Source: Adineta vaga (Eukaryota; Animalia; Rotifera). From it: a DNA stretch of 64,000 bases. The position numbers were made by a program, and so were the translations under genes. Of this stretch, positions 12,524-42,417 are shown in pieces; position 1 is the stretch's first letter; each line of letters opens with the position of its first letter. The notes below the pieces were generated by a model that was given only the letters and a program-made list of their open reading frames with translations, ran no database searches and was not told where the DNA came from. The stretch spans positions 11,098,001 to 11,162,000 of the forward strand of contig CP075496.1 in NCBI GenBank assembly GCA_021613535.1. The letters run 5' to 3'.

Positions 12524-13754
12524 TTAATTATCGATTAAAGAATTTTTCAGACAATCTCTGTACCAAACGAAACGAAGACAATCAATATTACCGCCATACT
12601 TGCCGTAGACGAAGCCGACAAAATAATTGGCAATCTTTTCTGTTCTTATTATACCTTCTGTGATGCCAAACGATTCGCTATGACCATAATTTGTTTCAAA
12701 TTCAATACCGGCAATGATTTGAATTACACTGCTGCCTACTTTTAAACGAATTGTTCGATTTTGTTCATAAGTAGTCACTCGCGTAATGGTTTCATTCTTA
12801 TCTAACGACATCTTTTTGGAATTTTCTGGCAAACGAACATGATTCTCACATCCATATTCCTGTCCATATCTACCATGAGAATAAAGAAATTTTATACAAC
12901 CTAACGTGTCTCTACCTGAAATAATTTGTAATGAAAATTCTTTCTTTTAGTACATTTATAGACTTACCATCTTCATCTTTGATAGTGAAAGTTTCGACAT
13001 CAGTTATCCTGTGACTGAAATCAAGATCAGCGATTTCAGCATCCGACTTTAAATGGTTCCCTCCGTACGTATTACCATGAAGCATGCCTCTTTTAACGAC
13101 GAGTATTCCTAGAAAATATTTCAGCTAGTTTTAATTAATTTTAATTTCTAATTTACTTTCAGATTGATATACATTGTCAGAGGATTTGTCATTCAACATC
13201 CAAATTTTCAGCGACGCACAAATGAGTATTACAATGACAATAAACAGACAAAGATCATATTTTGTTACATAAATTCTACCAATTTTATAGATAAATGATC
13301 GAGATTTAGAAGATTTATTGATTTTTTTCTTCATGAATGAACTAACAACTTGAAGATTAGATTAAATAACTAGATAAATATTAAAAACATAATATCTATC
13401 AAATTTACCTGATTTCGTTTTACAATCTTCATTTTTCAATGTTTGTTGATATTGTTTATAGTCTAGAAGATAAATTTGATTCTTAATATGAATGCACATA
13501 TTTAAATAACCTTCAAGTTTTCGAACAGCTTCGAAACAATTCATTTCTTGAAATGTTTTGATAAATAAATTCAAATCTTGCTCGGTAATTTTCTTTTGTT
13601 GATAGAATGATTTTATGGTCAATAACACATCGATAAGTATTGTATCGTTATGTAATTTTTGTATTAAAAGTCCACAAAGACGTTGTCGATCGTTTTCTGG
13701 TGCAATATTTCTTAATTTCAATAAGAAATTTTGACAATGAAAGTCTTTATTCAT
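12524..13754 (-). CDS. DED - TM - jacalin-like lectin protein, paralogue 1 (5 exons; extra intron inside the lectin)
   Basis: DED-like exon MNKDFHCQNFLLKLRNI...MNCFEAVRKLE; TM LCLFIVIVILICASLKIW; lectin GMLHGNTYGG...IIAGIEFETNYG...VYGKYGGNIDCLRFVW. An open frame can be spliced using an AAG acceptor near 13350. Confidence 0.8.
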
Positions 13755-13927
13755 CTAAAACACGATTCAAAATTATCATATTGATCTACATTCGAACTAA
13801 AGTATACACATTCGTGACTATGAATATGAAATGTCTTTCTTTCTCAGCTTATAGGATTTTTATGTCAGACATATCACAAAGAATACAGTTTGAACACAAA
13901 TTGAAACTTCTTTCATTCGTAGTATGT

Positions 13928-15273
13928 CTATTGAGCAAATAAATCGTCATTAATATGAAGTATAACAGTGTCGTTAAGAGAAAGTCGTTGATATTTATAA
14001 AATTGAAATCCATTTATATAATTATTTTTAATCAGTCCTTCAACATACCAATGAATAAAATTGTCAGTCAGATATTTACATTTATTGTTAGTATCTTTTC
14101 CGTATAGATGCTTTTCAGTTCCAATACCAATTAGTAAACCTTCGATATAAGTTGATTTATAATTTTTATCATTGAAATATTGAGTAAATTCTCTGATACG
14201 TCGCGTCGGATCGAATGTTAAGAGCGTTTTATTGGTTCCTGTACAATTATAGCTAAATTGATGTTTGAAAGTTTTGTGATTTGAATAAATAAATTCAATA
14301 GAACATATAAGTTTGCTCGTATGATTGAGTTCAATAGATGTCAAATGATCATTATATGTGAGAGAAAGATTTTGAGCATGACTGATCCGTTGACCATCTG
14401 TAATTGTAATATTAGAACATAATTCATCTTTTTTTATTATATATACCGCTAAATACGAGAACACAAATATATTATTTTAAACGTCAATGATTTGAAGAAG
14501 AAAAAACATACCGGAATCAGTTTTTGATCTTATAGGAGGTTTATGAAGTTTTTTTGGAAGAACAACCCATAGACAAAACACAAAAATTGAAATCATGAAT
14601 ATAGACATAAAAAATAAACTAATAGTTAATGATGATTTATAAAATCGTGGTGGTAAACTCGGTGAAATATGTTTTACTACTTTATTATTAGATTCTTGCA
14701 ATCGTGATAGACAACTATCTGAAATATTCGTCGAATAAATGTTTAATATTCAATCACAAAGACTAATTGGTATATATACCTGATACTAATGAATGTATCT
14801 CAAAAGTTGCACATTCATCATCATCATTATCCACGATAGTACTCCGTTGGTTAATGATTTATGTGACCGTTTTGCTGATTGAAATTCTGAAATACAAACA
14901 ATTCTGAACATCGATTTACGAAAATGATCAAACATATATTAGATATGATACACTTCAATATGAAATCTTTGCTTATTATAATTGACAAAAGAATTCGAAT
15001 GTGATCAACAAACAAACCTCGAAGTTGTCTAACAGCACTATGACAATTGATAGCATCAAATGCTTTGATTAAAAAATCGAGATTATTTTCCGTAATATTC
15101 TCTTGTTGAAATAATGTCTCGATAATATTTAATGTTCCATGAAGTGTTATATCATCACGATCATCTCGTGATACAATTGTACCAATCACAAAATGAAGTA
15201 AAGTTCGTTCTTCACTAGATATTTCACTTTGGAGATTGATTAATAATTTTCGACAATCGAATTGTCGATCCAT
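13928..15273 (-). CDS. DED - TM - divergent jacalin-like protein, paralogue 2 (apparent frameshift in exon 2, ~14845)
   Basis: DED exon MDRQFDCRKLLINLQSEIS...INCHSAVRQLR; TM LTISLFFMSIFMISIFVFCLWVVL; beta-rich last exon aligning to the paralogues (SLTYNDHLTSI, IEFIYSN, YINGFQFY). Confidence 0.75.
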
Positions 15274-16542
15274 CTGAAATCTATGTAAAACATATGTGCA
15301 GTCATGAAATCCAAAGATGAAAAAAGAATTAAAAAATGTAATATTAACAGGATAAAGATGAAATCCTATAAAGTTTATAGTGATTTTTATTGAAGTAGAA
15401 CGATGGGAAAAAGAGATAACGAATACAGACGAAGATAAATCATTCAATCAATTGAGAGAAGCTAATCTTTTATATGACATCATCACGCTTTTTTCCCAAC
15501 TTTAAAGGGTAAACTCATTCTTATGATTCAAGTCCATCAAGATGTGTAGCAGTAGTACCGCTTACTCATACCATGTAAGGTTATTTGTAACATTGTACAA
15601 TCTTGAATCTATAGAAACTAGTCCTATTTTCGATATGAATGTGATTATACATTTAGTCAATGATTACTACGATGCAGACTAATGAAATAACCTTACTGAT
15701 GTAGAAAGTATTGAAAAAAGAAACTCTTCGTCCACTTGGCATACCAAACAAGTAATGGGAAAAGTTTACGTGACTGATTTGTATACCAATTACCTATCAT
15801 AGATAGCCCGTTATCTTATTTCATTGATGCACCAATTAAAAGATTTAAAATTAGTTCTAATACGTGTATATTTATAAAGAAAAGATTTGGTTTTACCGAA
15901 AAAGTGTAATAAATAGATATTAGAAAACAAGATGCTAATAAAAGAAATGGACGTATGAATAAAGCGTGGAAAGAAAACGTATAAATATAATAATTAGCCA
16001 TGATAATTGGGAAACAATTTTTCTTTCCCATTGTAAGATTATTCTGTTTGAATACTAAACATATGAGAATGATGTCATTTTTGTTGTAATTCTATAGAAA
16101 TTGTTTATCTTTTGTAAATTAGCACAAATATATAATTCGAGAACATTGTATTCACCTTTTTTCTACGTTGAAATAGTTATTTTTACGACATATGATACAA
16201 TTTATGTAGATAAACATTTTAAAATGCGTAGACGAATTTGATATAATCTTCGATAATATTTCACTGCATGGATACGATAAATATAGATCATGGGAAAAAA
16301 TGTACGTAGATGTAGGAAGAGAAAAGAAACGCCTTATCTTTTGCCTGTCTACGTTATACGATATTTTTATGGCCCGAATTAGTTTTTATTATGTTCGTGA
16401 TATGGAATAAATACTCGAATTTAGATTCATCTGTAAAAATTCCGTCAAATTTGAATGTATTAAATTCTACTTTTATTTAACGATATATATTTATCAATCA
16501 TATTGACTATTTAAAAATACATGTTTGGGAATTTATTTCTTC

Positions 16543-17905
16543 TTAATATGATGAGAGAGTAGCAGTAGTTGACGGTGATGTAAGTCTATACCAAACAAAC
16601 TGTATTGCATCAATATATCCAGCACCTCTTCCTCGAATGTACGCTAGTGTATAAGTTGAAAAAGTCTCATTCACTACTATTGCATTTGAAGAACCAAAAA
16701 GTTCACTAAATCGTCCTCTATCTGTAAAAAAACGTAGACCAACGATCAGATAAGTACCATTTGGTGAAAATGGATTTGCAATAGTACGTGTACTCGTATA
16801 AATTGATACACTATCGATATGTTCGTCAGACTCTAAAACGAATGTCGACGTATATGGAGAAGAACGATATACTTCGGAACCATGCTGTTTAGATTTATCA
16901 TTTGTATAAGAGAATGTCACGAAATCTAAAACATCAGATGTCCATCCAGCGCTAATACTCATTATCTTATCATTAAAATTTAATGAACAATCTTTAGCAT
17001 CATTGAATTCATTACCACCGTCTATATTTCCATACATAGATCCTGCTTTGATAATTAATATGTCTACAAGTGACAATTAATCGTGTATAGATATATATAT
17101 ATATATTTTGTAGATCTTCGTAAAAACCTACCTGAGTTGGAACGTTTGACTTTGACGAACAGAATAAGTAACAATAGAAAAGCGGAAATACCAATAATAT
17201 TCAAAAAAAAAAGAATAAGTTGACAGATTGTTAATTTTGATTTGAATATTTGTTTGACTAATGTTACATTGACGTTGAAAAGTTTATTATCACAATGTAG
17301 TGATGTTTTCGTTAGATTTATTTTATCATCATTACAACTATTTTGATCAAATGATATTGTTGTAGCTTGACTCGATGTTGATGCACGCTCACTAGAATTA
17401 TGGCTTGCATTCAATTCTGGAGTAGACTCTAAAAGTATTCCAATGAATCTCTAAATCTCTACAATAATAGATAAATCTTACTGGGAAAAACAATTTTATC
17501 TAGTTGATCATTATCATCAAGTATATCGGAAACATTTGTTGCAGTAGTTCCACTATGAACTCGTTGATGTTGAATCAATTGATGTTCTGAAAAAAAACCC
17601 AAATAGAACAATGGTGTTAACTGTGAGCAAAACGCACATTATTACATACCTTTTAGTCGCTTTACTGCTTCATGGCAATGAATTTCACGAAACACTTGAA
17701 TCAAATAATCAAAATCTTGTTCACTAATTTTAGCTTGATCAAAAAGTGTTTCAAGAAGATTCAATGTTCCACCCAATGTTGGATCATCACGTAGTTGTCT
17801 TGGAATAGTATCACCAACAATGAAATGTAGACGTCGTCGATCATTATCCGACAAACAATCTTGAAGTTTTAAAAGTAGAGCTCGAAAATCAAATTGCTCA
17901 TCCAT
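16543..17905 (-). CDS. DED - TM - jacalin-like lectin protein, paralogue 3 (4 exons, intact)
   Basis: DED exon 17650-17905; linker NVSDILDDNDQLDKI; TM LTICQLILFFLNIIGISAFLLLLILFV; lectin YGNIDGGNEFND...IVGLRFFTDRG...GRGAGYIDAIQFVW. Confidence 0.88.
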
Positions 17906-18244
17906 GTTTTTATAAATACTTATTACTGTATATATAGTAATATAATATGATTATTACAGTATTTATGGTAATGTAATATGATATATCGATTTTGTTTTCT
18001 ATTGAAAATGAATGTAAAGTGCGAAAAAACCGTCACACTTCAGCACACATTTATTAAATTATTATATTAATAGTGGGTGATAAAAAAGAGATGGATGACG
18101 TATACCATTTATCATAGTATATAGAAAATAAATGTTTACTTTCTATTTCCTTTCTCAAGAAAAACATGAGTCAATATATGATCTAGTGATAGGTGAAAAA
18201 TATTTTTTACCTACAATTTTATTTATCCATACATTCTACATGAG

Positions 18245-19420
18245 CTATTTTAAAATATCCGACACTCGTGTTGTGACATTACAAGGACGAGACTTATACC
18301 AAATAAACTGTAACGCATCAATAAATCCGTGAGATCGACCTCGAGCAAAGGCTAGTTTATAATCTGGATATACTTCGTCGGATCGTGTACTACTTGCTGA
18401 TCCAAATAGTGCACTCTGCCGATTTTCATTTGTATAAAATTGCAGACCAACAACGATTGTAGTTCCATTCGGTTGATAAGGATTAAGAATTTTACGCATA
18501 TCTTTATAGATCGTAACACCTATGATGTTTTCTTCAGGATTCAACATAATTGTATTAGTAAGTATGGATGGTCGAGTAGCATCACCAGTTCCATGTATTG
18601 CTGTTGCACCATTAGAATAGATAAATGTGATTGTTGTAAGTGAATCAAAGGACCATGTCGCTTTAACACCAAGTAACTTGTCGTTTATTGTCAATAAATT
18701 GTTGAGAGCATCATCAAATGGTTCACCACCTAATGGTTCGCCAAAGAAAAGACCTTCTCGAACTATTAAAACACCTAAATGAAAACGTATCATGTAAATT
18801 TTTCGTTAATAGTTAAGATTACATACTTTCTGAACAGTTTTCTTCACGAATAGAAGAATGAAGCGTTATCTCATCAGAGGATATTATTGGAGCGTGACTT
18901 GATGTTGACCCATGTTTGTCAGAATCATGGGAAGCTTCATACTCAGTAGATAAACCTGAAAATATTTATTCATTTCAATATTTTGTATCGTATTCAGTAA
19001 ATTTTACAAATAGTACTGATTTTATCTTCATTATCATAAAGGATATCGGATATCATCTTTGAACCAACATTGTTATTTTCTGATCGCCGTTGTTTTAGTT
19101 TATGTTCTAAAATAATACAGTTTGATTAATGTTGACGAAGAAATATAAAATAAATGCTGCAAACCTTTTAATCGCAGTACGGCATGAGGACAAGGAATTT
19201 TGTGGAACGCGACAATTAAATAATCAAAACATTGACTACTAATTTTACCTCGATCAAAAAGTGATTCAAGAACATCCAATGTTCCACCCAAGGTTGTATT
19301 CTCACGCATAGATCTTGGAACATCGTTGCCCAAAATAAAATGAAGGCTTCGACGATCTACTTCTGACAAGGAATCTCTAATTTCGAGTAACAATCCTCGA
19401 AAATCAAATTCTTCATTCAT
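18245..19420 (-). CDS. DED - jacalin-like lectin protein without TM helix, paralogue 4 (4 exons, intact)
   Basis: DED MNEEFDFRGLLLEIRDSLS...IPCPHAVLRLK; hydrophilic exons 2-3; lectin FGEPLGGEPFDD...VVGLQFYTN...GRSHGFIDALQFIW. Confidence 0.85.
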
Positions 19421-20789
19421 GTCTGACAATTGTTCACTATAATGTGTTTTTGTTTACTAAAACACGTAATATTATCCCGTAGTAGATGAATACGAAAGTT
19501 TGAAAACACTATTGATATTTTATTGCACAATTATTGAATTATATACAAATACTAATAACAGACAGGTAAATAAATATACGTCATTTCACCATGGTAGATG
19601 ACGAATAAGTGTTTACTTTTACTCACATGTTTAAGGTAAGAATAAATCAATGCACGATTTTTTCCTGATCGATGACTAACACGGTCATGCAAAATTTTTT
19701 TGTTAATCCCACATGTGGTTTAAAATAAGATTATCATGCATATTCGCAAGTATCAATGTTATGGAATTACATTCAATTAAAAAGGAAGCATTTTAAAACT
19801 ACTGAGAATAGTATCCTATTCGTTAAGCCAAAGAGTTCATTCATTCACTTGTGTATATACGTGATTTCTTCCATTGAAAAAATGAAATAGCACGTACAAG
19901 AAAACATCGACTTTTCGAATACTCCAATACCGTATTGACGTGGTTCTGTTGTAAAAAATAAAATTAGAATTTAGTCTGTCACTTTTGTTTTAGTATAATC
20001 TAAGTTTTTATCTTCTGCGCGTTTACATTTCGATTCATCATATTCTTGAAGTACTTAATGAATTAATTTTCGTTGATTTTATGAGAGATAGACAATGTCT
20101 TTTGTTTGACCTACTCGATATTGAAACAATGAAACCTAGAATATTTCCAGAAAATATATCAAACAAAATTGTTGGCATAATTTCGAAAAAGAATTTTCCG
20201 TCTAAAATCAAAAGTAAAACTTTAGAAAAATCTTATTCACCATAATCCTGTTATTTAATGACAAGTCGATTTTTCCCTTTGCTTTTATAATGTAGCAAAG
20301 AAAACAATTTTCAATCACTTTATATGAGTCATAATTTTTATCTTTTCTGTTCTTCTTTATGGTTGAATTATCATATAATGCATCAATATCAATAGATACA
20401 TTAATTTAACTCATAGGAATATACCCATGGTTGTTTTTTTCCCAGCTACAATAGTTTGTCTATCATAACGTTATAAAAGTGAATGAGGTTCGATGACACA
20501 ATGCAGTTTAAAAAAATATATGTCTACACAAATAAAATCGACGATAACTATGTCAAACTGGGAAATTCTTATATCATTTGGTTTATAGATGTTGCATAAT
20601 ACGACAGAATCTTCAGCAAAGATAAGACAAATAAACCAATTGAAATTCTCATTGGATAATTTCATATATGATTGAAACTTTAAATAACTTGTAATTATAA
20701 TCAATGAAATATTTTATCTCTACTTTAGATATATCTTCATTTTATAGATACTACGTAATATTCGGTATTGACAACGTATATATCTGATA

Positions 20790-21854
20790 ATGACTAATAA
20801 TTTAAAAAATATTACTCAAGATAAATCAAATGCTGGTGAACATATACATTATGGTCATTTCTCATTGAAAGATGACGATAAATCTCAAGATATAAGAACA
20901 ATTGTTCGTTCAGATAGTCATGATACTTGTAAAGACACATTAAGACGCATTCGATCAGATAGTTCACCTACAAAAATGTATACTTTATACATGTCAATTC
21001 CAATCAGACAACCACACAATCCAAACTTTTTCACACGACATATGGATCAAGATGAAAAGTTAGTTAAAATTGTTACCATTGCAGACACATATAATCATTA
21101 TTGTAATCGTGAATTTGATCGTAAAATTCGACAAATTCAAGGAGATATTTTAATTCATGCTGGTAATTTTAGTAATGGACAAACAACTTCAGAAATTATA
21201 GATGCTATTGCTTGGTTATGTTCATTGTATAACTTCAAATATAAAATTTTCATCGCTGGTAATATAGATGGAATTATTTTAGATGGTGTTCATCCTAAAG
21301 ATTTACAAGACAAATATAAAGAATTGAATCCACGCAGTAAAAATGTATTCTATTTAGAAAATAATATGATGAATTTTCTTGGAATTAATATTTATGGTTG
21401 TCCATATACATCCAAACATTACGGTGGTTTTCAATATTTACCTGAATCACAAGAAGCACGAAAATTATGGGAGAAAATTCCACACAATTGTGATATTCTC
21501 ATTTCACATGGACCACCTGCAGGTATTTGGGACAAAACTTCAAAAGGTATATCAGTGAACTACAAAGAATTTAAATTATACTTTTACTTTCTATATTACA
21601 TAGGTGAACATATTGGTTGTCATGTCTTACGAGACGCAATCGAACAAAGACCATCTTTAAAAGCTATCATATTTGGTCATGTTCATTCTTCTTACGGTTC
21701 TACACAAATAGACAAGAAATGGTTTATCAATACTTCTCAATATCATGGCATATTTCATTACGATAAAGAAAATCAACCATATGAAATTGGCATACGATGT
21801 TCTGATAAAAAAATTACTAGTGTTAATATTATTTCTTCTCAAATACTAGATTAA
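20790..21854 (+). CDS. Calcineurin-like metallophosphoesterase (MPPED/239FB-like) with degenerate metal motifs; probable 57-nt in-frame intron 21547-21603
   Basis: IADTYN, GDILIHAGNFS, KIFIAGNID, IYGCPY, ILISHGPP, IFGHVHSSYG. Confidence 0.85.
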   Translation: MTNNLKNITQDKSNAGEHIHYGHFSLKDDDKSQDIRTIVRSDSHDTCKDTLRRIRSDSSPTKMYTLYMSIPIRQPHNPNFFTRHMDQDEKLVKIVTIADTYNHYCNREFDRKIRQIQGDILIHAGNFSNGQTTSEIIDAIAWLCSLYNFKYKIFIAGNIDGIILDGVHPKDLQDKYKELNPRSKNVFYLENNMMNFLGINIYGCPYTSKHYGGFQYLPESQEARKLWEKIPHNCDILISHGPPAGIWDKTSKGISVNYKEFKLYFYFLYYIGEHIGCHVLRDAIEQRPSLKAIIFGHVHSSYGSTQIDKKWFINTSQYHGIFHYDKENQPYEIGIRCSDKKITSVNIISSQILD

Positions 21855-21899
21855 ACATTCCAATTTCAATTCAATAACAATGTTTCAGTTGTTTATAAC

Positions 21900-22460
21900 A
21901 ACCTAGATGAACAGAAAACATATTTCAGAACAGCTAAAACAATGAAATGAGTCGATGAATGTGTTTTCTCTGATTGTGTATAGAAATGTTTTAAATTTTG
22001 TAAGATTATAATATTAAACGAGATAATTCCAACCAACTGATTCATATGTAATTTCTGATTCTAAAGATGCAGCAAGATATAAATAAGTTATTTATTATTG
22101 AAATAAAGACCAAAAATATTCTGTATCAAATAACAATTGTATAAATTCATGTTTTGTGTCTAAATGATACAAGTTTGATGATATTTCAAGTATATTTTCT
22201 AAATATTTAGGATCTTTTGGTAAATCAGACCATAGAAATTTAGAAAGATGAATGCATTCAGAAATCTCTACAAAATAAATCAAAAATTGTTGGTGTGAAT
22301 CGAAAAATTCAATCTTACTTAATTGACACTTTTGGTTAATTCGTAAAGAAAGTATTTGTAATCATTGTGATTATTTTAGAATAGGAAAGATATCAAGAAT
22401 ACATGATAGAACATCACATAAAGATGAAAAGTGAATAGCAATTATTGCCTGATACAGAAG
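21900..22460 (-). pseudogene. Degenerate fragment of an LRR-like repeat gene
   Basis: Leu/Ile-periodic segments (YLENILEISSNLYHLDTK, LQILSLRIN) interrupted by stops; the family assignment is by eye only. Confidence 0.3.
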
Positions 22461-23439
22461 TTCATTCAGTAGTTTATAATTAGAAAAAATTGCTATTTTA
22501 TAATCCAATTTTAATACTAATACCATAGAAACCGCCATTAGCAAAACTGAAAATTGATGTTAAATTTGCTTTTAATGAAAATCTAATATAGGCAGGTAAA
22601 ACAGTGATTAAAGGATTATCTGTAACAAGACTAATTGTACCTTGTTCATATGATGTTCATTTATCTATGGCTCGATTATTCTCTAAAAGAAAAAAAACAA
22701 TAATAACTCATTAATCGTTCACTCTTTTGAAGAATTCGACGAACGTTGAAAAGCACGATTATATATAATTTTACCATATAAACATCCTCATTACCACTAT
22801 TGATATTTGCTTCAAGGATAACACCATGCATTGTTGATGGAATTGATTGACCACCATTTTATTCATAGAAAAACTTTATGAGTGCGATAGACTTCAATCG
22901 ATACGTAATTCAGACAAAATCTTAAAACGAAATGTTTTTCTTTATAATTTTCTTTGTAGAAATTTATCATTAATAATAAGAGGCTTTCTAGTTTTTCGTT
23001 TGACTGAATATTTGGGATATGGATGTGAAGCAATATTGAAACGATTAATAACTCTTATTTCATTAATAGTATTATTTTATTTTCTGTCGTTGATTTAAAT
23101 TCCTAATCAGATGGTTACAACGATGAAATCTGTTCCTGATCGTTGATTTCGAAAATAGTCTCGGATTTCTCTTGTGAAGTATTCATTTTAGTATCACAGG
23201 TATAATTAGCGTTTATATTGGTTCATAGGCGAGTATGGACAAATACGTAATTGACTGGATTTCTTGAACGAAGAAACATGATCGATCCAAAATCCAAGTT
23301 CAAAGAAACAAATGTGAATGATGCTAGACCATGAAAAACTCTCATCGGTCCAAGTCTCATTATCACAAATGATTGTGTCATTGAATGATCCTCGAATTTT
23401 ACAAACTTGTTTGTTTGACGTTAGAATCCATCGCGTATC

Positions 23440-23736
23440 GAATACTTTTGAGTTTTGGGGGAATTTCGAAAAAATGTTTTTTTGACCTTTGACCCTTCAC
23501 TCCACCCTACCCTAGTGTTATTTTTCAATGTTTTCAATCATTTTTAAGATAATGTTTTTTTGACCTTTGAACTTTGACCTTCGATCCTTCACCCACATCC
23601 CGCCCTCACCTATTACTCCACTCATACCGACACCCGAATAATTTTTTAGTATGGGACCCTTCACCCTGACACAGACACACACATACACAAACTATTTTTT
23701 TCCATATGACCCTCCTTTCAGTGGAGGGAATCAGTT
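23440..23736 (+). mobile_element. 3' part of a non-autonomous Helitron/Helentron-like element
   Basis: Internally repeated TGACCTTTGA(C/A)C blocks, an ACAG/ACAC microsatellite (~23669-23690) and a terminal GC-rich hairpin CCCTCC-N7-GGAGGG (23710-23728); locally higher GC. Confidence 0.5.
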
Positions 23737-23772
23737 AAATATTATATTATATTCTTTACCTATTGATTTGAT

Positions 23773-25027
23773 ATGACAGATAACAAAGATCAAGATTCGA
23801 CATATAATGAATTAGATCAACAACGTTTATTAAAACTTCAACAATATATTCGATTGTATCTAGAAAGAAAAAAATATGCTCCCATGTATGAAAACATGTA
23901 ATAGATTTTTTAATTCTTAATTACCATTGTTTTTAGGGTTCGAAATTTAACAATGATTTTATGCTTACATATTCAAGTATTATCGTTGATGAACCTTATT
24001 GAAGAAATATCTATAAAAAAAGGATAAAACAGAATACGGCAAAATAATTGAATCAATAAAAAAATCTATTCGTCAGTTAGCAAAAAGTGCCGAAGGTATG
24101 TTCCATTCTAAAATTTATAAAGTTAATGCTTTATTTCCTTTAAGGATTCTACATTAACAGCAACAAAATTTGATGAAGCATATAATATAATAATTTTGTC
24201 GCTTGATTGTGAATTTTCAAGATTAAAACAGATTTTTATGAATGAAGAATCCACTGAGTTACAACAAAAATTTGAACAAATACATGTAAATTCATATAAA
24301 TTATTCGTTTAAGATAAAATGAACATCGTATCTTTTTTAGAATGAATATGAGAATGAAAAATTTAAAAAAAGTTTTGGAACAGAAGAACAATCCAAACAT
24401 TTAACTTCTGAACATCCGAAAAAGTATAATATTTATCGTATTCGACAAAGTATTACAACAACCTTTGGTCTTTTGTCATCAATCCAATCAAATACAAATA
24501 CTTCACACTCGTCGTCATCATCATCATCACAGGCCCGACAAAAATCTGATCATGATACGAAACATTAATGTTTAGTGTGGGAGATCGAAAAAAATTATGT
24601 TACATTTTTGGCCATTACGAGATTTAGCAATAAAGATCCATCAATTAAAGGTAAAAATGGAGTTTTTCCTATATTGGATAGAACATATTTGCTGAAACGT
24701 CTTATATCAATTGGCTCAACGCGAGAACTTCCTGGACAAAAATCAATTACAGCATTCAAAAAGTCAAATATTCCGAGTGATTTAAATGGGTACCTCGTTT
24801 TAATTCCTACTGTCGCTGCAGAGAATGTTAAATGGGAAGATCATTATCCATATTATTTTAGTCAAAGTGATCTGATGTATATCAATTTCCGGCTTGCACA
24901 ATTATCCAAAGATATTGATATTGAAGATTATTCAACTTCCGAATCAAGTTCATCTGTACCAACATCTCGACTCGAATTCGAACGAATAAAAGATTGGATG
25001 CTGAACAATAAGCTTGAAAAGACATGA
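23773..25027 (+). pseudogene. Chimeric gene or pseudogene: myosin VI-like IQ/lever-arm segment fused to an unknown C-terminal domain
   Basis: LLKLQQYIRLYLERKKYAP followed by helical KDKTEYGKIIESIKKSIRQL...TKFDEAYNIII, with no motor domain; frameshift in an A-run near 24020 and in-frame TAA at 24566-24568. Confidence 0.5.
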
Positions 25028-26346
25028 GTAACTGCACATAAACCACAACCAGACTTGTGACTTGTGTGTACTTGCTCATATACAACAACACTAATATGTA
25101 TACTTTTTTTACAAGTACATTCGACAACAATGACAATGTAGCCATTGACGAAAATGATACTTCATCACCGAACATCGAAATTATTACAAAAACAAACAAT
25201 GATAATACAAGTCGTGTAAGAATCAAACATTTTTTAATGCGATGTGAAGAATGAGCTATAGTGATAAATTTCTTAGATAAACGATAATATTATTTTTTAT
25301 TCAAATTAATATGATTTAAAAGAAAATACAGTTTTCTCTCATTCAGACGTCGAATTAATTAATTATGCTAAAATCTGCATAAGATTATCAATATTCAAAG
25401 AACTAAAGATTTATCATTAATAAATTGGTTATCTGCTTTATTTCGAACTATAAATAAATCCGCAAAATTCCATCATCTTCGTCATTAACATAAATCCATC
25501 CATACTTTTCATTTCGTTATCTTTATTTTTGAAAATCATTCCTCACATCCATCATCTTTCATTTCCACAAAAACATACCATTCCTTTCGAAAGTACTGAT
25601 ATCATAATATCTATTTTCAATATAATATTTTAGCGAATGCTAATCGCACAGCATTCCGCAGCCGAGTAAAGCTCGAGTATCGTCCAGTTAATGATATTTA
25701 TTCTCTATATTTGAGATTGATGTTATATCAATGAACAATGAATTTTCGCATGTGGTATCCGATGTTCCTGATCAACTTGAGTATTTTAATTCAAATGTCG
25801 ACATCAATTCATCCGTATGTTTAACTAATTTAACACTAGTTGATGTTCACTGTTTGGTTGATGTAAGTTAAATAGTAGATTTTAAATGCTTTTGACTCTG
25901 ATATTACTAATCAGTATCGTTCTAATACTATTGCGAAAAAGCAATGAGTGATCAATAACTTTTTATGATGTGCCAAAAATCAGTATTCTCTGTCCAGTTC
26001 TACGACTTCATTCTGATCCACCCGGATGGTATTATGTATCGGCATGGATTTAATCGATCAGTAAAATAGATAAAATGATCAGTTATTAAATGAAACCTCT
26101 CTTTAATAAATTATATGATTAGAAAATAAAATATTTTAACGGTCAGTTATACTAAACAATCAGTAGAAAAGTCAAAACAGACTAGGGTGTATTCGAGTTG
26201 TCGTTTGTTTAATTTCTTGAGGGTGTGGGTAACAATGGTAAATATATTGAATACTGATCCCACACTTTCACCCTCATTCAAATAAATCTTGTTTTTTCTT
26301 TGCTCAAAACGTCGTTTATTATTTTATGTTTACCTTTATTTTGTAG

Positions 26347-27593
26347 AATATTGAACCAATTGATTTGAAAACAAACACATCGAATTTCATTACATCTAGG
26401 AATAAAATTTCGTTGATTCTTGTGGCATAATATTTCATCATTTTTTCTCTACGACGAATCTTTTCTACTGTTTAGATTCCATCATATGGTAATACAAAAT
26501 GGATATCAGATCAAATTGATTTGAAAATGGAAGAAATTAGTTTCCGATATGAACATTTTATTCTTTTTCGTGATGTGGCTTCCGAATCTGAGAAAATCTT
26601 GGTAAAAGAAAAATTCATTTGTTTAAAAATAATATCAATTTGAATAATTTAATAGAGAATGATTTTACGTGTAGATGTATCTCATGTACCATATCGTTTA
26701 TTATTATATTCACCATTTTCAATTGTTAATTATACCGAGTTAAAGATTGAATTTCAGGTAGAAAGAATACTTTTTTAATATGAAATTGTAAAATTGTATT
26801 CGATTTTAAATAGATTGGGAATAGTCGAATGTTTATTAGTACTTCTCAAACACCAGTTCTAGTTTGTACAGAAAAATTCGAAAGTGAAGATAATAGAAAT
26901 GTAAATATCCAATCAAAATCAAAACAAATTTATATTTCATTATGACATAGGGTCAATTTCGTCTTTATAATGTCGAAGAAGATATCACAATGACAAATTG
27001 GTCGAAAAAATTCTCACTTGATGCTATTAAAAGTATCGATATGATATCGTGTCAAACAGCGAATGATCGTACATATATGGTAAATAAATTTCATTTTTTA
27101 ATGAACATAAAATATGTTTATAAATAGATTTGTGTGGATATTCTTACATCTTCATCGGGTTTGACCATAAGTATTAGATTGACACTAGCAGTACTTCTTA
27201 TAAACAAATCCATTCTACGTTTTTAACAAAGTCTTGTTTCTCAATTAAGAATTATTGTTTGTTTTAAGATTTCGATTGAAATAATTGAAATAGAATTAGA
27301 CAAAGGACAAAACAAATGGATATTGGTGCACCCGGAACAAGCACTTTTATTATTACGTCTATTAAGCATTCAATTCTTACATTTTCTTTTAGATGATTCC
27401 ATTATGGCTGCGCAATCTAAAAAATTGTTTCACACGTATTCGTTATGCACATAATCATGTAACATCTGATCCATTTCCAATTGACGAAGAACGTCAAATA
27501 CGTTTACCTATGAATTACAGCGAATATCCGCTTATTAGTGTCAACATCAAGCACGATCATTTGAATGGAATCAAAGTTATGTTTGAAGACTAA
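26347..27593 (+). pseudogene. VPS13A/C-like gene fragment (SHR-binding/VAB repeats) retaining introns
   Basis: Spliced LLLYSPFSIVNYTELKIEFQ, WSKKFSLDAIK, ICVDILTSSSGLT, KWILVHPEQ|MIPLW, IKVMFED*; no other VPS13 regions nearby. Confidence 0.75.
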
Positions 27594-27699
27594 GACACTC
27601 ATATTATATCATCATCTTTTTTTAAAACTATTTCGTATTAATAATAAATTTAAAAAAATATAGTTTCATAACTATATTTCGATATCCATTGTCGAATAC

Positions 27700-28460
27700 C
27701 TTGTGTTAAAATGTCTGGTTGAAGGATTATCCCAACTGTTACAAATGCAACCAAAAACTTCCACATTGATAAATGGTTTGAAACAGATACAATTAATGAT
27801 TCGGATAAGTGACACTCTTTTTCAGTCCAAAAATAAAGATATTTTAATGAAAAAAATGTTGATGCTAACTGAGATATTGAAGAAGTTATCGATTGAAATA
27901 TATCTGATGAATGTACAATAATACATGAATGAGTAATGTGATGTTTTAAAGTATCCCAAACTAATTGATTCTTCCATAATAATTCAAATAATTCATCGCC
28001 AATATTTCTGAAGTATTAAGATTTGGTAAAACTTCAATTCATTTATAAAAATCATTCATTATTGTTATTGTAGTAAGACGAAATAATTTACAAAGTTGAT
28101 ATGTTTCTGCAAAAACTTATTTTTATTTTAGAACAATTCCTAATAAATCTTCTTACTTGATATGAGATTTTTACTTAATTGTAAACATAAACGATTTAAA
28201 TGATATTATTTTGAAATAATTGAAAATATTTGACTAATTTCTTATGGTACTGAATATAAATGTCAAAGTTTTGTTTTTGCTAATGAACATGGAAGAACTA
28301 GACCTTCGAAATGAAATGATGATAACAGAGAAAAAATTCTATTTTCATCATCTAGATCAATATCAGCATAACCATCAATATTAATTGCAAGATATTCAAG
28401 ATTAAAAAAAAAGGTTTTAAAATTAATTCTAATTCAGAAAAAATCCATTGATAACGAATC
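27700..28460 (-). pseudogene. Degenerate LRR-like gene remnant
   Basis: FFNLEYLAINID, HLYSVP, VLPNLNT segments broken by multiple stop codons. Confidence 0.35.
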
Positions 28461-28465
28461 GATTG

Positions 28466-29300
28466 TAGAGTAAGGTGGGGTGTTTGTGCAAAAATATTAG
28501 TGTATCTCAGTATAATGACTATAAATTTACTAATATCAGTTATTTTGAAAAACTTTCTTTACAAGTTATCTAGTTAAGCATATGCTCTATTGATTAATGA
28601 AAATTGCTTCTCAAAATCTTGTCTGTAAACCTATCGGCATCGGGTTCTTTAAAGACGAGTTTTTGATTTTTTAATTCTCCTACTGTGTTCAAATCGATAA
28701 ACCCGCTTCCCCTCTTAGGGTAAATGTATAATCCTAGCAATTTTTCTTTGTCCCGTAAAACCTAAGTTTTGCAGGATTCTTATGGGTTTTCTCGGTTATT
28801 CAAACGTGAAAAATATCGAATCTTGTTGTAAAGGTAATACCGCAAAAATAATTACAATGAGTTCATGCGCTGTTTTCCGTACATGTACGACAATATTTGA
28901 TCGTCCTTTCCTTATCTGATCCCGCTATAAACTCTAAAAAAATTGAATTTTTGCCGAAACTAAAAGGTTTTCCATGCTTCCACCAATCTATTTTAAGTTT
29001 GGTAAGATCGAGAAGGTTTGGCTGGTGAGAAGAAAAGCCATCTGAAGGTTTTCTATGTGATACGTGAAACCACTGATAGTTCTGTAACATGTTCACAAAA
29101 CCAACAGTGATTTCGCAGGCGGGCGATAGGTTTAGTCTATTTTCTATCAAAATATTCTTAGTTTTGTAGATCAGCTGCTAGTTCAGGATATTTTACACCA
29201 TACTATCGACGGTTCGTCAGTTTTCGAAAAGTTCAGCATGTTCACTAGTAAACTCGTTGTGGTTCTGTATATCTCCTACTGATACAATGACAGATCATGT
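28466..29300. mobile_element. Possible DNA-transposon remnant
   Basis: Begins TA-GAGTAAGGTGGGG with a similar TAGGGTAAA motif near 28716 (TIR-like starts); GC is higher than the flanks; no matching right TIR identified. Confidence 0.3.
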
Positions 29301-29416
29301 CAATACCAAAATCAATACCAATACTATGCTATATATAGGTACAAAAAACAGTAATTTATTACAGATAATATTAACAAGATGAACACACACATATGGTGCT
29401 TTCATGAACATATGAA

Positions 29417-30750
29417 TTAATTTAAAATTTTCGAAATGGGCCCTGTTTTACTATGATGGCGAAATTTAGACCAAACAAACTGCAATGCATCTATATAGCC
29501 ATGAGATCGACCTTTAGCAAATGCTAATTTATAATTGGAAAGTATTTCATCGTATCGTGTACCATTCGCTGATCCCAATAGTTCACCGATTTTATTGGAA
29601 GTTTTATAAAATTGTAGACCAACAATGATTGTGGTTCCATTCGGTTGATAAGGATTAAGTATATCACGTACACCTTTATAAATAGTGACACCTGTAAAGC
29701 TTTCTTTTGAATTTAAACTCATTTCACTGGTGAATACTGATGATCGAGTACCGTCACCAGTTCCATGTGTTGCTGTTGCACCATTGGAATAGGTGAATGT
29801 GATTGCTGTAAGTGAATCAAAAGACCATGACGCTTTGACACCAATTAACTTGTCATTAATTGTCAATGATTTCGTAGCAGCATCATCAAATGGATCACCA
29901 CCTAATGGTTCGCCGTAGAAAAGACCTTCTCGAAGTATGAAAAAACCTACATGAAAAACACGTTAATCATTGTTGAAAAGTAGGACGATAACACTACATA
30001 CGTTCCGAAGTTTCGTCTTTATGAATACAGGAATTTCTCCTTAATACAACAAATACTACAACTAAGATCAAAATACTTATAATATTCAGAAATAAAAGAA
30101 CCAATTGACATATAGTTAATCGAGATTTTATTGTTTGTTTGATAAAAGTTAAATTGATATTCACTATTTTCCTATGAGATTTTATAGAAGTAACTGATAC
30201 TGGTACTTTATTTGCAAGTTCATCATCGTATGTATTTTCAAAGATCGGTTTGCAATGCCGTTGGTCAATGTTGTCGGCTGAACACTTATTGTAGTATTAT
30301 CTAAAATATTTGTTTAAACATAAGCAATAAGAATCAAAACATACTCTTTATAGCGACTCGATCTGTTTCGTTGTCATCGACAATTTCAGAAATTGTCATT
30401 TTAGTTCGACTTATATGACCATTTCTAATCAATTGATATTCTAAAACAATGATAGTATGAGACTAACCATGATAACAAATGAATTTACCTTTTAGTCTTT
30501 TGACACCTTCATGACAATGAATTTCACGAAACACTTGAATCAAATAATTAAAATCTTGTTCACTAATTTTCGCTTGATCAAAAAGTGTTTCAAGAAGATT
30601 CAATGTTCCACCCAATGTTGGATCGTCACGTAGTTGTCTTGGAATAGTATCACCAACGATAAAATGTAGACGTCGTCGATCGTTATCCGATAAACAATCT
30701 TGAAGTTTTACAAGTAAAGCTCGAAAGTCAAATTGTTCATCCATTGGCAT
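29417..30750 (-). CDS. DED - TM - jacalin-like lectin protein, paralogue 5 (4 exons)
   Basis: DED nearly identical to paralogue 3; linker TISEIVDDNETDRV; TM LTICQLVLLFLNIISILILVVVFVVL (~30040-30120); lectin YGEPLGGDPFDD...GRSHGYIDALQFVW. Confidence 0.87.
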
Positions 30751-37071: not shown

Positions 37072-38610
37072 ATGAATAATCATTGTCAACCAATATTTAT
37101 TGATAATCTCTATGGTTCATTAACAATTAATACGAATGATAGTTCATCATGTATTGAACCACGTCAATGGATTTTTTTCTATGATTATGGTTATACATTG
37201 TTGATTCGTTTAATTAATATATCTTATTTACTGTCTCAAGCATATTTAGTTAAGACTTATTCGATTATAAATAAGCAAAAAACACTTATCTATGATTCAA
37301 CAAATATAACATTTAGAAATAATGAAATTCAGTTGGATATTCGTGAGAAAAATTCGAGTGTACTAGTTGAATTAATATCAGTAAAAAAGATCAATATGCA
37401 ACAAACATCCTTTATTATTGATTATGCTTTTCGAGGTAAGATTTATGTAAAGAGAAAAAAAAAGTGATTAATTTCATACACGCTATGAATGAATATTTTA
37501 GAATCGTCTCAATCACGCTATGGTCGACAGATACTTCAAGATAACTCATCATCATTTAATGCGAATCAACCATCATTTATTGCATTAATCTGTGTCATTG
37601 CCGTACTCTTAATCGCTATTATTATTACAATTACTGTTTTTTGTTATCGTCATTGTTCGTATCGACGACAATCGAAAAAACGCTATAAAATTCGTGATAA
37701 ATTTCGACAAGCTTTAAGTGAACAGCAATCGACTGATCAAACACATTTAGCAGCATCAATAACACCGTCGTCTGCTTCATCACATTCGATTCGATCAACT
37801 AGACGTTTATCGTCACATCATCATTTAATGCATATTCAACAACAAACACCATCACTGGGTATTAGTACAAGTACATTACCATCAATATTACCATCGCGAC
37901 GTTTACAACAGTCAATGATGGATGCTTATTTGAATGACTACAAAGCTTTTCAACCAAATACAATCGATCCAAAACGATTAAATTCGTATTTATTTATTGA
38001 TTTGTATTCCACATCAAGTGAAACATTTCCTGATACAATTTCCAAACAACATGCAAATGAAAATACAACAACAAGTGGATATGATACATCCACAGGTGGA
38101 GAAGATCGACATTTTCAAAATCCAATACGATATCGTCGCCGTCGTGGATATTATTATCATCAAAGGCAACGACGTCGTTCAACAAGAACATTAAAACGAT
38201 CTTATGGTCCTCGATTCCTGATGCGTGAACGATCATTACCATGTAATCTTCTTAAACTTCCGCAACTTCGTCAAGATCAAAGTTTCTTAGGCGTTCGAAC
38301 GAGTCACAGTAGTAGTACAAATACTAATCAAGATTTCATTTCTACAAATGTATCGACAACCACAGATGATTATGATGAAAGTCATGCGTATCATGTTCAA
38401 CATAGTCGGACTATGAACACTATCGAAGAAGAAAAACCTATCGTAATTCCAAAATCCTATTCACAACAACCATATTTTTTTGAAATGGTTTCAACAAATC
38501 GTGGTGATGACAGTGATATGCCAAATTATGAAGATATCCAAATTCCATATAAAGCTTGTCCCATAAGAGGTGATGGAATAGCCTATATAAACGATTCAAT
38601 TATTGTGTAA
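37072..38610 (+). CDS. Uncharacterised single-pass membrane protein (beta-rich ectodomain, TM, long low-complexity cytoplasmic tail); 5' end unresolved
   Basis: Exon 37072-37435 spliced to a 373-codon ORF; TM FIALICVIAVLLIAIIITITVFCY followed by basic RHCSYRRQSKKR. Confidence 0.65.
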
Positions 38611-41014: not shown

Positions 41015-42009
41015 ATGTCTTTGAAACGTCCTTTATCACCTGAATCAAATAATAAGAATAATTCGATCACAAATGATGTTCGTCAATTAAAACGTTTTAA
41101 ACTTCATTCAATCATTCAAGAATTGCAAAATGAAGAAGCAAAATTAGTTCTTTTGAAGAAATTACGAGCAAGTCAACAATTATCATCCTCACGAACAAAC
41201 AAAAATTTATCAACAATTACCAATGGTTTTCATTCTCCCACAACAACAACAACAACGACAATAGCATCCGTACCAACACAGTCGAATATCCTATCGATAA
41301 AATCCACACCATTACCAATTACAAATCCAATATCTCAACCACAACCGATACAACTACCTACTACGACAACTACTCCTGTCGTAAATCGTCGAATTCTCCA
41401 TTATTAACAAATGCTAATCGAACATCTTCTACACATGTATTGGAAGAACGTAAAACACAAGCAAAATTAACTTTACGTAAACATCTAGAACGTGATTTAT
41501 TGAATATTCCATTACCAAAACCATCATTACAAGATATTATGTTTATTCCTAATGGAATAAGTCTCGAATTTCAACCATTTGTTGGTCTAGAAGATGTTGT
41601 TCAATGTTTAAGTGAACTACAAAGTGATCGTCATCGTTTACCACAACGTTTTACTGATCATGCTCACATTGATTCACCATACGTATGTGATCAATGTGGA
41701 ACAGATTTCACAATTCGTTGGTGGAAACATATGAATTCGAAATCATCTAGTGACATGATGAATATTCTTTGTGATCGTTGTAAAAAACAAGTTACAAGAC
41801 GAATGTCAAAATCTGAACACTCAGGATTATTAAAACATGTTTTTATTTCTGCCATGGAACAAGAAAAAGAGATCGATAAACATTTCAATGCCCTTATTAA
41901 ACAACAAAAACAAGCATCTCGTTCATCATCGTCAACATCAAAATCTTCGACATCAACTACACGTCAAATACAATCTGTAAAAACGACTTTAACCCATATT
42001 CCGTCTCCT

Positions 42010-42040
<31 letters not shown>

Positions 42041-42417
42041 ATCAAACATCAAAGACGAAACATTCTTTACCACAGACTATTCCTACAAAACTTTCACAAC
42101 AATCCGTACCTTCACGAAAATCAAATCAGATAATGATTCCATCTTCGGCACATGGAAATCGTTCACGAACGACGCATGATAATAAACTATCAATATCATT
42201 GCATCATCAACAACCATATCGTTCATCGACAATCTTACCGCAACAAACGAAATCAAATCAAATGGTTAAAATGACAAAAAATAATGTAAAACAATCATCA
42301 ATTACATCATCATCTCGTTCAATATTTCCTTCTAATCCTGATCTTACTCATTCTTTTTTATCAGCAACTGTTGGAAAACCAACATCTTCGAAAAAACGAA
42401 CATTTCCTAAAAGTTGA
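41015..42417 (+). CDS. GATAD2: Transcriptional repressor p66/GATAD2-like (NuRD subunit), intronless CDS with apparent frameshift near 41380
   Basis: CR1 ELQNEEAKLVLLKKLRASQ; CR2 AKLTLRKHLERDLLNIPLPKP, VGLEDVV; GATA-type finger CDQCGTDFTIRW...ILCDRC. Confidence 0.9.

Follow-up and report, generated by a model that had tools for sequence, protein, structure and literature searches.

A tandem gene cluster in the bdelloid rotifer Adineta vaga joins a death effector domain to a jacalin-type lectin, mostly through a predicted membrane helix

Death effector domains (DEDs) are textbook parts of soluble adaptors and caspase prodomains, and a gene cluster of the rotifer Adineta vaga raises the question of what such a domain is doing at the head of a predicted membrane lectin. 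The cluster lies in a 64,000-nucleotide stretch of chromosome 4 (positions 11,098,001-11,162,000 of an assembly of 100.8 Mb in six contigs with ~30% G+C), the whole of which is referred to below as the window. It consists of five paralogous, co-oriented, spliced genes, transcripts being seen for genes 2-4, with the order DED, linker, transmembrane (TM) helix and jacalin domain, the TM helix being absent in gene 4. Five co-oriented paralogues had been proposed here from the letters of the window and a list of its open reading frames (hereafter, the original prediction), and all five were found at their places, on the minus strand. The architecture is unusual and undescribed in the searchable literature, while the family itself is real, expressed and lineage-specific.

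The DED and lectin exons of genes 3 and 4 are carried by one mRNA. Contigs of three spliced sequencing runs (X1, X3 and X5, taken as RNA from their spliced joints) and of a DNA run (X12) were aligned over positions 13800-19700 of the window, which hold genes 2-4. At the joints in X1, X3 and X5 the skipped parts end in CT..AC on the plus strand, that is, GT..AG on the gene strand, and none of these joints was present in X12 over the same interval. Gene 3 is the best-supported member: its three introns (17064-17131, 17429-17481 and 17587-17649) are all RNA-confirmed in X1, X3 and X5, its four exons are covered by overlapping contigs broken only at heterozygous single-nucleotide polymorphisms, and translation of its modelled exons yields exactly the database protein P0155. 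In gene 4, the stretch from the DED exon across the two middle exons to the jacalin exon is spanned by individual RNA contigs, 477 nt long in X1 and 656 nt in X3, with joints at introns 18775-18826, 18956-19007 or 18956-19016, and 19107-19164. Since RNA contigs join these exons and gene 3 equals P0155, the possibility of separate mRNAs for DED and lectin falls away, and the single-transcript structure assumed in the original prediction holds for genes 3 and 4. In gene 2, introns 14887-15017 and 14449-14511 are matched by RNA joints in run X5 only, at low depth.

The introns of the window genes are short (52-131 nt) and of the GT-AG type; in gene 1 every intron is GT-AG and in phase 1, and no exon contains an in-frame stop. 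Gene 4 has two donors 9 nt apart, intron 18956-19007 being seen in X3 and 18956-19016 in X1, which adds or removes three linker residues. Database proteins identical to window genes bear Adineta vaga I4U23_ locus tags. Genes 1 and 5, however, are split or cut short in public annotation, which should be taken as an annotation warning: the model of gene 1 (P0028) starts at the TM exon and covers the TM and jacalin exons only, and in that of gene 5 (P0007, 315 aa) the greater part of the TM exon is missing.

The N-terminal domain is a DED, as had been supposed, with Pfam, structure prediction and structural comparison in agreement. Genes 1, 2, 4 and 5 were searched exon by exon, and full-length work was carried out on P0155. 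The Pfam DED profile (PF01335) matched the first exon of genes 2-5 with E-values of 5e-10 to 4e-6. The exon of gene 3 scored 39.8 bits against a gathering cut-off of 35.9 (35.5 bits for whole-protein P0155), and genes 2, 4 and 5 remained under the cut-off with 27-35 bits (E 1e-8 to 4e-6; 3.3e-6 for gene 2). The first exon of gene 1 escapes the Pfam profile, but a profile made from DEDs of this family gives it 98 bits. AlphaFold2 (AF2) modeling with 22 family sequences produced a six-helix bundle with a predicted local distance difference test (pLDDT) score of 81.9, and the top 50 Foldseek matches in the PDB were all DEDs, from caspase-8, cFLIP, FADD, PEA-15, MC159 and vFLIP (query template-modeling score, TMq, 0.61-0.80, mostly 0.7-0.8; root-mean-square deviation mostly ~2-3 Å). 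The corresponding E-values were only 0.03 to 2, which is expected because the domain is small (85 residues) and helical.

The DED sequences nevertheless set the family apart. Most DEDs, though not all, carry an E/D-RxDL charge triad in helices 2 and 6; here the arginine of the RxDL motif is replaced by an invariant cysteine (C77), and the motif reads C-x-(D/E)-A with its acidic residues kept. Because of this cysteine, the rotifer domain is classified as a divergent DED subfamily rather than the canonical FADD/caspase-8 type. In helix 2, F28 is nearly invariant among the 22 family DEDs and is equated, by our own alignment, with the F25/L26 hydrophobic patch of FADD. Comparison of Adineta proteins with their Rotaria orthologues gives 88-91% identity for the DED, in contrast to 60-63% for the lectin.

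Complex prediction with three copies of the DED gave a score of 0.39, against 0.01 for the best control; in a calibration made with two copies rather than three, 21 of 30 solved homomeric pairs attained this score and none of 23 solved single chains did. Three runs shared at least 96% of their contacts, with a partner pLDDT of at least 87. The predicted interface places helix 2/5 (F28, I29) of one copy on helix 1/4 of the next (contacts 28-48 and 29-5), with F28 at its centre, as in solved DED filaments. DED clustering and assembly, an element of the original prediction, is thus plausible, the canonical DED-DED contact being predicted as a model.

A disordered linker of ~100 residues follows the DED, and genes 1, 2, 3 and 5 encode a single hydrophobic helix between the DED and the lectin. 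In none of the five proteins was an N-terminal hydrophobic stretch found, the DED standing at the very start; one TM helix in four of five copies and the lack of a signal peptide are both as first described. In gene 3, the hydrophobic core comprises residues 191-209 within a modelled helix of residues 185-214 (Kyte-Doolittle 19-residue maximum 2.87; AF2 block-mean pLDDT mostly 83-96). In the full-length model (mean pLDDT 77.6), residues 99-170 are disordered (pLDDT < 50), and ~178 residues, including the folded beta-prism, lie C-terminal of the helix. Gene 4 is without a TM helix because its exon 3 measures 129 nt, compared with 297 nt in gene 3, and contains no hydrophobic segment. For the anchored members, an N-in/C-out (type II, signal-anchor) topology is plausible, since there is no signal peptide, a folded domain of 90 residues precedes the only TM helix, and a positive-inside bias runs through the family: across 44 TM flanks, lysine and arginine number 167 on the N-terminal side versus 130 on the C-terminal side, and aspartate and glutamate 35 versus 67.

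The C-terminal domain is a jacalin domain of the mannose-type beta-prism I fold, on which Pfam, AF2 and Foldseek likewise concur with what had been proposed. Pfam Jacalin (PF01419) scored 26.6-41.6 bits in genes 1, 3, 4 and 5 against a cut-off of 22 (E 2e-10 for gene 3), and 17 bits, under the cut-off, in gene 2. When the lectin domain was compared as a single sequence with those of the PDB, no match was returned, and the family profile was required to match jacalin-related lectins there. In the gene 3 model, the prism has a block-mean pLDDT mostly above 90, and Foldseek paired it with banana lectin, artocarpin, ZG16p and further jacalin-related lectins of the mannose type (E ~1e-10; target template-modeling score, TMt, 0.80-0.86); ZG16p and ZG16b are among the closest animal structural matches. 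The sugar-loop motifs, which had been described for all copies, are kept in genes 1, 3, 4 and 5, as the GG loop and as the Asp that belongs to the second loop, and are both lost in gene 2. The first Gly of the GxxxD motif is canonical in gene 1 and in a TM-less subfamily. Sugar binding by the lectin domains is plausible on these motifs.

Four of the five frames are open, and two genes deserve comment on their state. In gene 2, the assembled haplotype has an exon 2 (14780-14886) of 107 nt, and the frame is broken. Run X12 includes a DNA contig that is 2 nt shorter at 14835, with several base differences nearby; the exon would then measure 105 nt, the length seen in gene 3, which makes an intact second allele probable, and the two alleles may differ in coding capacity. 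In gene 5, use of the acceptor at the paralogous position (30300) gives an exon 3 of 299 nt that runs into a stop, and use of an AG located 23 nt downstream (30277) shortens the exon to 276 nt and leaves the frame open, with the TM helix included. The DED of gene 5 is nearly that of gene 3 (96% protein and 93% DNA identity; 13 synonymous and 3 non-synonymous codon differences), and its lectin is 67% identical to that of gene 4 and 43% to that of gene 3. This mosaic suggests recombination or gene conversion between paralogues.

To place the cluster, the A. vaga genome was searched with the family DED profile, which returned 56 matches, ~52 of them strong. For 44 DED genes, a TM-bearing open frame was present within a few hundred bases downstream (42 loci inspected); the larger downstream frames were clustered and representatives scanned with Pfam. 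The C-terminal modules comprise TPR_12 arrays (12 loci), NHL beta-propellers (12 loci), jacalin domains (10 genes), DM9 repeats (3 loci) and, at one locus, a bacterial-type mannanase galactose-binding-like domain, and some loci (for example L012, L014 and L020) have little beyond the TM exon. Five of the 10 jacalin genes are those of the window; two lie at C2:15.16 Mb and one each at C3:3.86, C1:11.40 and C1:15.69 Mb. By their profile matches, the jacalin, DM9 and galactose-binding-like modules are all of lectin type, and putative sugar-binding modules recur on the same chassis. The five window genes are accordingly best described as one branch of a family of ~50 genes, in which the DED head stays the same, a TM helix follows in most cases and the C-terminal module is exchanged.

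Public proteins combining a DED with Jacalin or with NHL come from A. vaga, A. ricciae, A. steineri, Rotaria sordida, R. socialis, R. magnacalcarata and two further Rotaria species, and many exon-sized metagenome fragments also match the family; public protein searches returned no named homologue outside bdelloids. These homologues carry automatic names only, so that the architecture is present in public annotations in uncharacterised form. A word-indexed search on the DED region returned only 11 proteins, an alignment query being more productive. Related jacalin modules were also encountered behind other heads in metagenome and Adineta ricciae proteins (P0035, P0045 and P0072): a toxin-type ADP-ribosyltransferase takes the place of the DED in P0035 and P0072, and DM9 and TPR_12 accompany the jacalin modules in P0035 and P0045. 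The occurrence of jacalin modules behind ADP-ribosyltransferase heads would mean that recognition modules are shared between different head domains.

DEDs head a further kind of protein in this genome. At C5:14943562-14949545 (L001:1063-7046), two adjacent DED-headed helicase genes were found, the first with two tandem DEDs and the second with one. Both have DEAD/ResIII and Helicase_C domains and no TM helix, and their Pfam DED scores are above those of the receptor DEDs. The predicted layout is RIG-I-like, with DEDs replacing CARDs; Pfam gave no match to the RIG-I C-terminal domain in these two genes. Several apparent fusions in public annotation were set aside. The 'DED + beta-lactamase' protein P0163 (I4U23_016006) is probably two merged genes and was not counted: at the corresponding locus, L006:310-4216 (C3:15938709-15942615), TM and NHL exons lie between the DED exon and a beta-lactamase frame with its own hydrophobic N-terminus. 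'DED + Mutator' (P0165) and 'Hint + DED + jacalin' (P0130) also look like merged gene models and were not counted, and 'DED + GH16' and 'DED + GH18/CBM' (P0167, P0169) are putative fusions in the annotation. In the window itself, the other large frames belong to ordinary genes (metallophosphoesterase, Med27, ZIP transporter and myotubularin), and the frames at 37489-38610, 41440-42417 and 51443-52270 (275-373 aa) match no Pfam family at E <= 0.001.

Table 1. Coordinates of the five genes in the window and of lectin-type modules of related genes elsewhere in the A. vaga genome (L-numbered loci).
Feature	Position	Strand	Description
Gene 1	12524..13754	-	Divergent DED-like domain, TM helix, jacalin; five exons; intact 340-codon frame
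Gene 1 exons	13511-13754, 13409-13462, 13157-13348 (TM), 12968-13108, 12524-12915	-	Extra intron inside lectin
Gene 2	13928..15273	-	DED, TM helix, degenerate jacalin
Gene 2 exons	15018-15273, 14780-14886, 14512-14718 (TM), 13928-14448	-	
Gene 3 (I4U23_020711, P0155, 392 aa)	16543..17905	-	Best-supported DED-TM-jacalin gene
Gene 3 exon 1	17650..17905	-	DED, residues 1-86
Gene 3 exon 2	17482..17586	-	First part of disordered linker; RNA joints both sides
Gene 3 exon 3	17132..17428	-	Remaining linker and single TM helix
Gene 3 exon 4	16543..17063	-	Jacalin-like beta-prism lectin domain and stop codon
Gene 4	18245..19420	-	DED and jacalin without TM helix; 337 or 334 aa
Gene 4 exons	19165-19420, 19008 (or 19017)-19106, 18827-18955, 18245-18774	-	
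Gene 5 (I4U23_020717)	29417..30750	-	DED, TM helix, jacalin
Gene 5 exons	30489-30750, 30345-30440, 30002-30277, 29417-29946	-	387-codon frame if acceptor 30277 used
DM9-repeat ends of DED-TM genes	L034:3568-4080, L031:3528-4025, L030:3511-4005		
Bacterial-type mannanase galactose-binding-like domain ending a DED-TM gene	L038:2506-3048		One locus

Considering this architecture, we hypothesize that the proteins are glycan-sensing membrane receptors that signal through DED assembly, a proposal to which we give an even chance. Beyond the architecture, the mechanism is what we infer. As signal-anchor membrane proteins (type II, N-in), the receptors would expose the lectin outside the cell or in the lumen, where it would bind a glycan, most likely mannose-type sugars of microbes or fungi. 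A multivalent ligand would cluster the receptors, and the cytosolic DEDs would then associate, helix 2/5 against helix 1/4, into an oligomeric platform. This platform would signal via other DED proteins of the same genome, not via a DED-caspase, and the output would be immune gene induction or cell death. Copies without a TM helix, such as gene 4, would act as cytosolic sensors or regulators of the same DED network. The DED-headed helicases provide a DED-based immune context in the same genome and were counted in favor of this proposal.

A number of observations weigh against it. The DED departs from the usual charge triad through its cysteine, and the complex prediction, besides its two-copy calibration, may reflect memory of solved DED filaments. 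In the lectins of genes 3-5, the first Gly of GxxxD stands one residue away from its usual place, and the lectin of gene 2 is without both loops. The topology is clearer for the family than for the window, whose own TM flanks are balanced or slightly reversed (3 lysines and arginines on the N-terminal side versus 4-6 on the C-terminal side), and the 12 family members that end in a long TPR_12 array, normally cytosolic, fit poorly with a family-wide C-out orientation. Nor do the several N-glycosylation sequons cited in the original prediction help: the gene 3 lectin has 2, when 2.6 are expected from its composition, their number is at chance level on both sides of the membrane, and the argument was dropped, although one NGT (residue 321) keeps its place across the gene-3 clade. 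The type II receptor claim is thus plausible, N-in being favored by the lack of a signal peptide and by the family charge bias, against which stand the ambiguous flanks in the window and the uninformative sequons. On the downstream side, 70 matches to caspase domains exist in the A. vaga genome, and a genome-wide search with Pfam DED and the family profile found a DED beside none of them and none beside a Death domain, and thus no FADD-like gene was seen. Finally, a search of a pathogen-challenge study and its supplements (PMC11258130) for DED, jacalin and their Pfam numbers gave no usable rows.

Among competing explanations, the one that survives best, while still unlikely, is that these are non-immune membrane lectins serving cargo sorting, granule packaging or cell-matrix contact, with the DED as an oligomerisation module only. 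The structural proximity to ZG16p and ZG16b would suit such a role, as would the presence of transcripts in runs with no known infection and the housekeeping character of the neighboring genes. The lineage expansion to ~50 genes, the tandem clusters and the swapped modules behind a conserved death-fold head are, however, the usual signature of immune and conflict families, and DEDs are otherwise known from death and immune signalling.

Rather unlikely as well is a role as MAVS-like, organelle-anchored platforms fed by the DED-helicases, with a luminal C-terminal domain that tunes localisation or turnover. MAVS itself has an N-terminal death-fold, a long disordered linker and a membrane anchor, all of which recur here; DED-helicases are encoded in the same genome, and the loci with little past the TM exon could be read in the same sense. 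MAVS carries a CARD, however, and is tail-anchored with nothing past its TM segment, whereas the window proteins continue with a folded lectin of ~170 residues. Because a folded domain of 170-1000 residues follows the TM helix in most members, the family is not tail-anchored, and the swapped lectin, propeller and TPR modules resemble a set of recognition domains.

Less probable again is the downstream route of the original prediction, in which clustered DEDs directly recruit and activate a DED initiator caspase, a caspase-8 analogue, without FADD, in the manner of death receptors. The fold of the domain is closest to the DEDs of caspase-8, cFLIP and FADD, the predicted interface is the canonical one, and the caspase repertoire of A. 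vaga is large, as its 70 domain matches indicate. With a DED exon beside none of the 70, and with rotifers being without a DED-containing caspase-8 according to a 2025 survey (PMC12066828), the recruitment step is not supported. The only DED exon and caspase domain in the genome within ~4 kb of each other, at L003:668-6088 (C3:3843167-3848587), belong to two genes: the first is of the DED-TM-TPR_12 type, and after it, in the same orientation, comes an independent gene that has a start of its own and whose product combines a helical N-terminal region with a caspase-like Peptidase_C14 domain. As neither a DED-caspase nor a FADD-like gene was found, the likeliest partners of the receptors are the other DED proteins of the A. 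vaga genome, candidates being the product of a small DED gene at C2:2299804-2300067 and the DED-helicases.

We also consider it improbable, and place it after the caspase route, that the proteins are FLIP- or PEA-15-like regulators whose DEDs tie up other DED proteins and weaken their signalling. PEA-15 and FLIPs of both viral and cellular origin do occur among the structural matches, and the TM-less gene 4 and the degenerate lectin of gene 2 would be compatible with such a function, which nevertheless leaves unexplained both the retention of folded lectins with a mostly kept Asp loop and the repertoire of recognition modules. That the cluster is an artefact of unrelated DED and lectin exons or of decaying pseudogenes, as the frame break of gene 2, the shifted acceptor of gene 5 and the split or truncated public models of genes 1 and 5 might suggest, is scarcely credible when spliced contigs join the exons, four of five frames are open and the same architecture occurs in at least eight bdelloid species.

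The proposed glycan-sensing receptors can be compared with several known systems. Vertebrate death receptors (Fas, TNFR1, DR4/5) with FADD and caspase-8 are alike in that clustering of a single-pass receptor nucleates a death-fold assembly, as proposed here, and the DEDs of FADD and caspase-8 share the fold and, as predicted for the rotifer domain, the contact of helix 2/5 with helix 1/4. Death receptors, however, are type I proteins whose ectodomains consist of TNFR cysteine-rich domains and whose cytoplasmic part holds a Death domain, the DED residing in the soluble adaptor and the caspase, whereas the rotifer proteins have the DED on the receptor itself, a probable N-in orientation and a lectin ectodomain, in a genome where no FADD or DED-caspase was found. 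They do not belong to the TNFR superfamily: they have no signal peptide, Pfam finds only DED and Jacalin, and the DED is N-terminal to the TM helix, so that any likeness is one of function alone.

Similar in its overall plan is Dectin-1 (CLEC7A), a type II C-type lectin receptor with an N-terminal cytoplasmic signalling element, a signal anchor and a C-terminal lectin, a topology that the rotifer proteins would share. The extracellular lectin of Dectin-1 recognises microbial glycans, and the receptor signals on clustering. It differs in signalling through a short hemITAM and Syk with no death-fold, and in having a C-type lectin-like domain instead of a beta-prism.

Fusions of death-folds with recognition modules have been described as 'direct connector' genes of amphioxus and sea urchin, including DED-NACHT, DD-NACHT and TNFR-caspase combinations (PMC2575513); these are alike in their lineage-specific expansion, in the fusion of a death-fold to a recognition module and in the resulting shorter pathway. 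They are mostly cytosolic NLR-type or TNFR-caspase proteins, however, and those lineages have DED-caspases; the same paper mentions no lectin and no DED-TM-lectin architecture. On the lectin side, banana lectin, artocarpin, human ZG16p and the pearl-oyster protein PPL3 share the beta-prism I fold and the GG and Asp loops of genes 1, 3, 4 and 5, but are soluble or secreted proteins of single or tandem domains without a death-fold or TM anchor. The one available survey of rotifer lectins, restricted to proteins with signal peptides, reported no jacalins in Adineta or Rotaria (PMC8878817), the present family having been excluded because it has no signal peptides. Full-text literature searches combining DED with jacalin, bdelloid and rotifer found no description of the family, in keeping with the original prediction, in which no described family was known with the DED-TM-jacalin architecture.

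More tentatively, and with less confidence than in the receptor proposal, a bdelloid DED network without caspase-8 or FADD can be envisaged, in which about fifty receptors with interchangeable sensors and the DED-headed RIG-I-like helicases converge on DED filaments with an immune or death output. If so, bdelloids would possess a class of innate receptors built on a death-fold head, parallel to the Toll-like and C-type lectin receptors, in asexual animals that are known to face pathogen pressure.

The interest of the locus therefore lies less in its five genes than in the fifty-gene DED-headed repertoire that they reveal: a DED mounted directly on a membrane lectin, in a lineage without a DED-caspase, and the same DED at the head of about fifty genes with swapped modules. 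If the proteins are receptors, they would represent a new wiring of pattern recognition to death-fold assembly, and what a DED filament signals to without caspase-8 and FADD would become the question. They would also provide a candidate endogenous receptor repertoire for bdelloid immunity, which has so far been discussed mainly via horizontally acquired genes.

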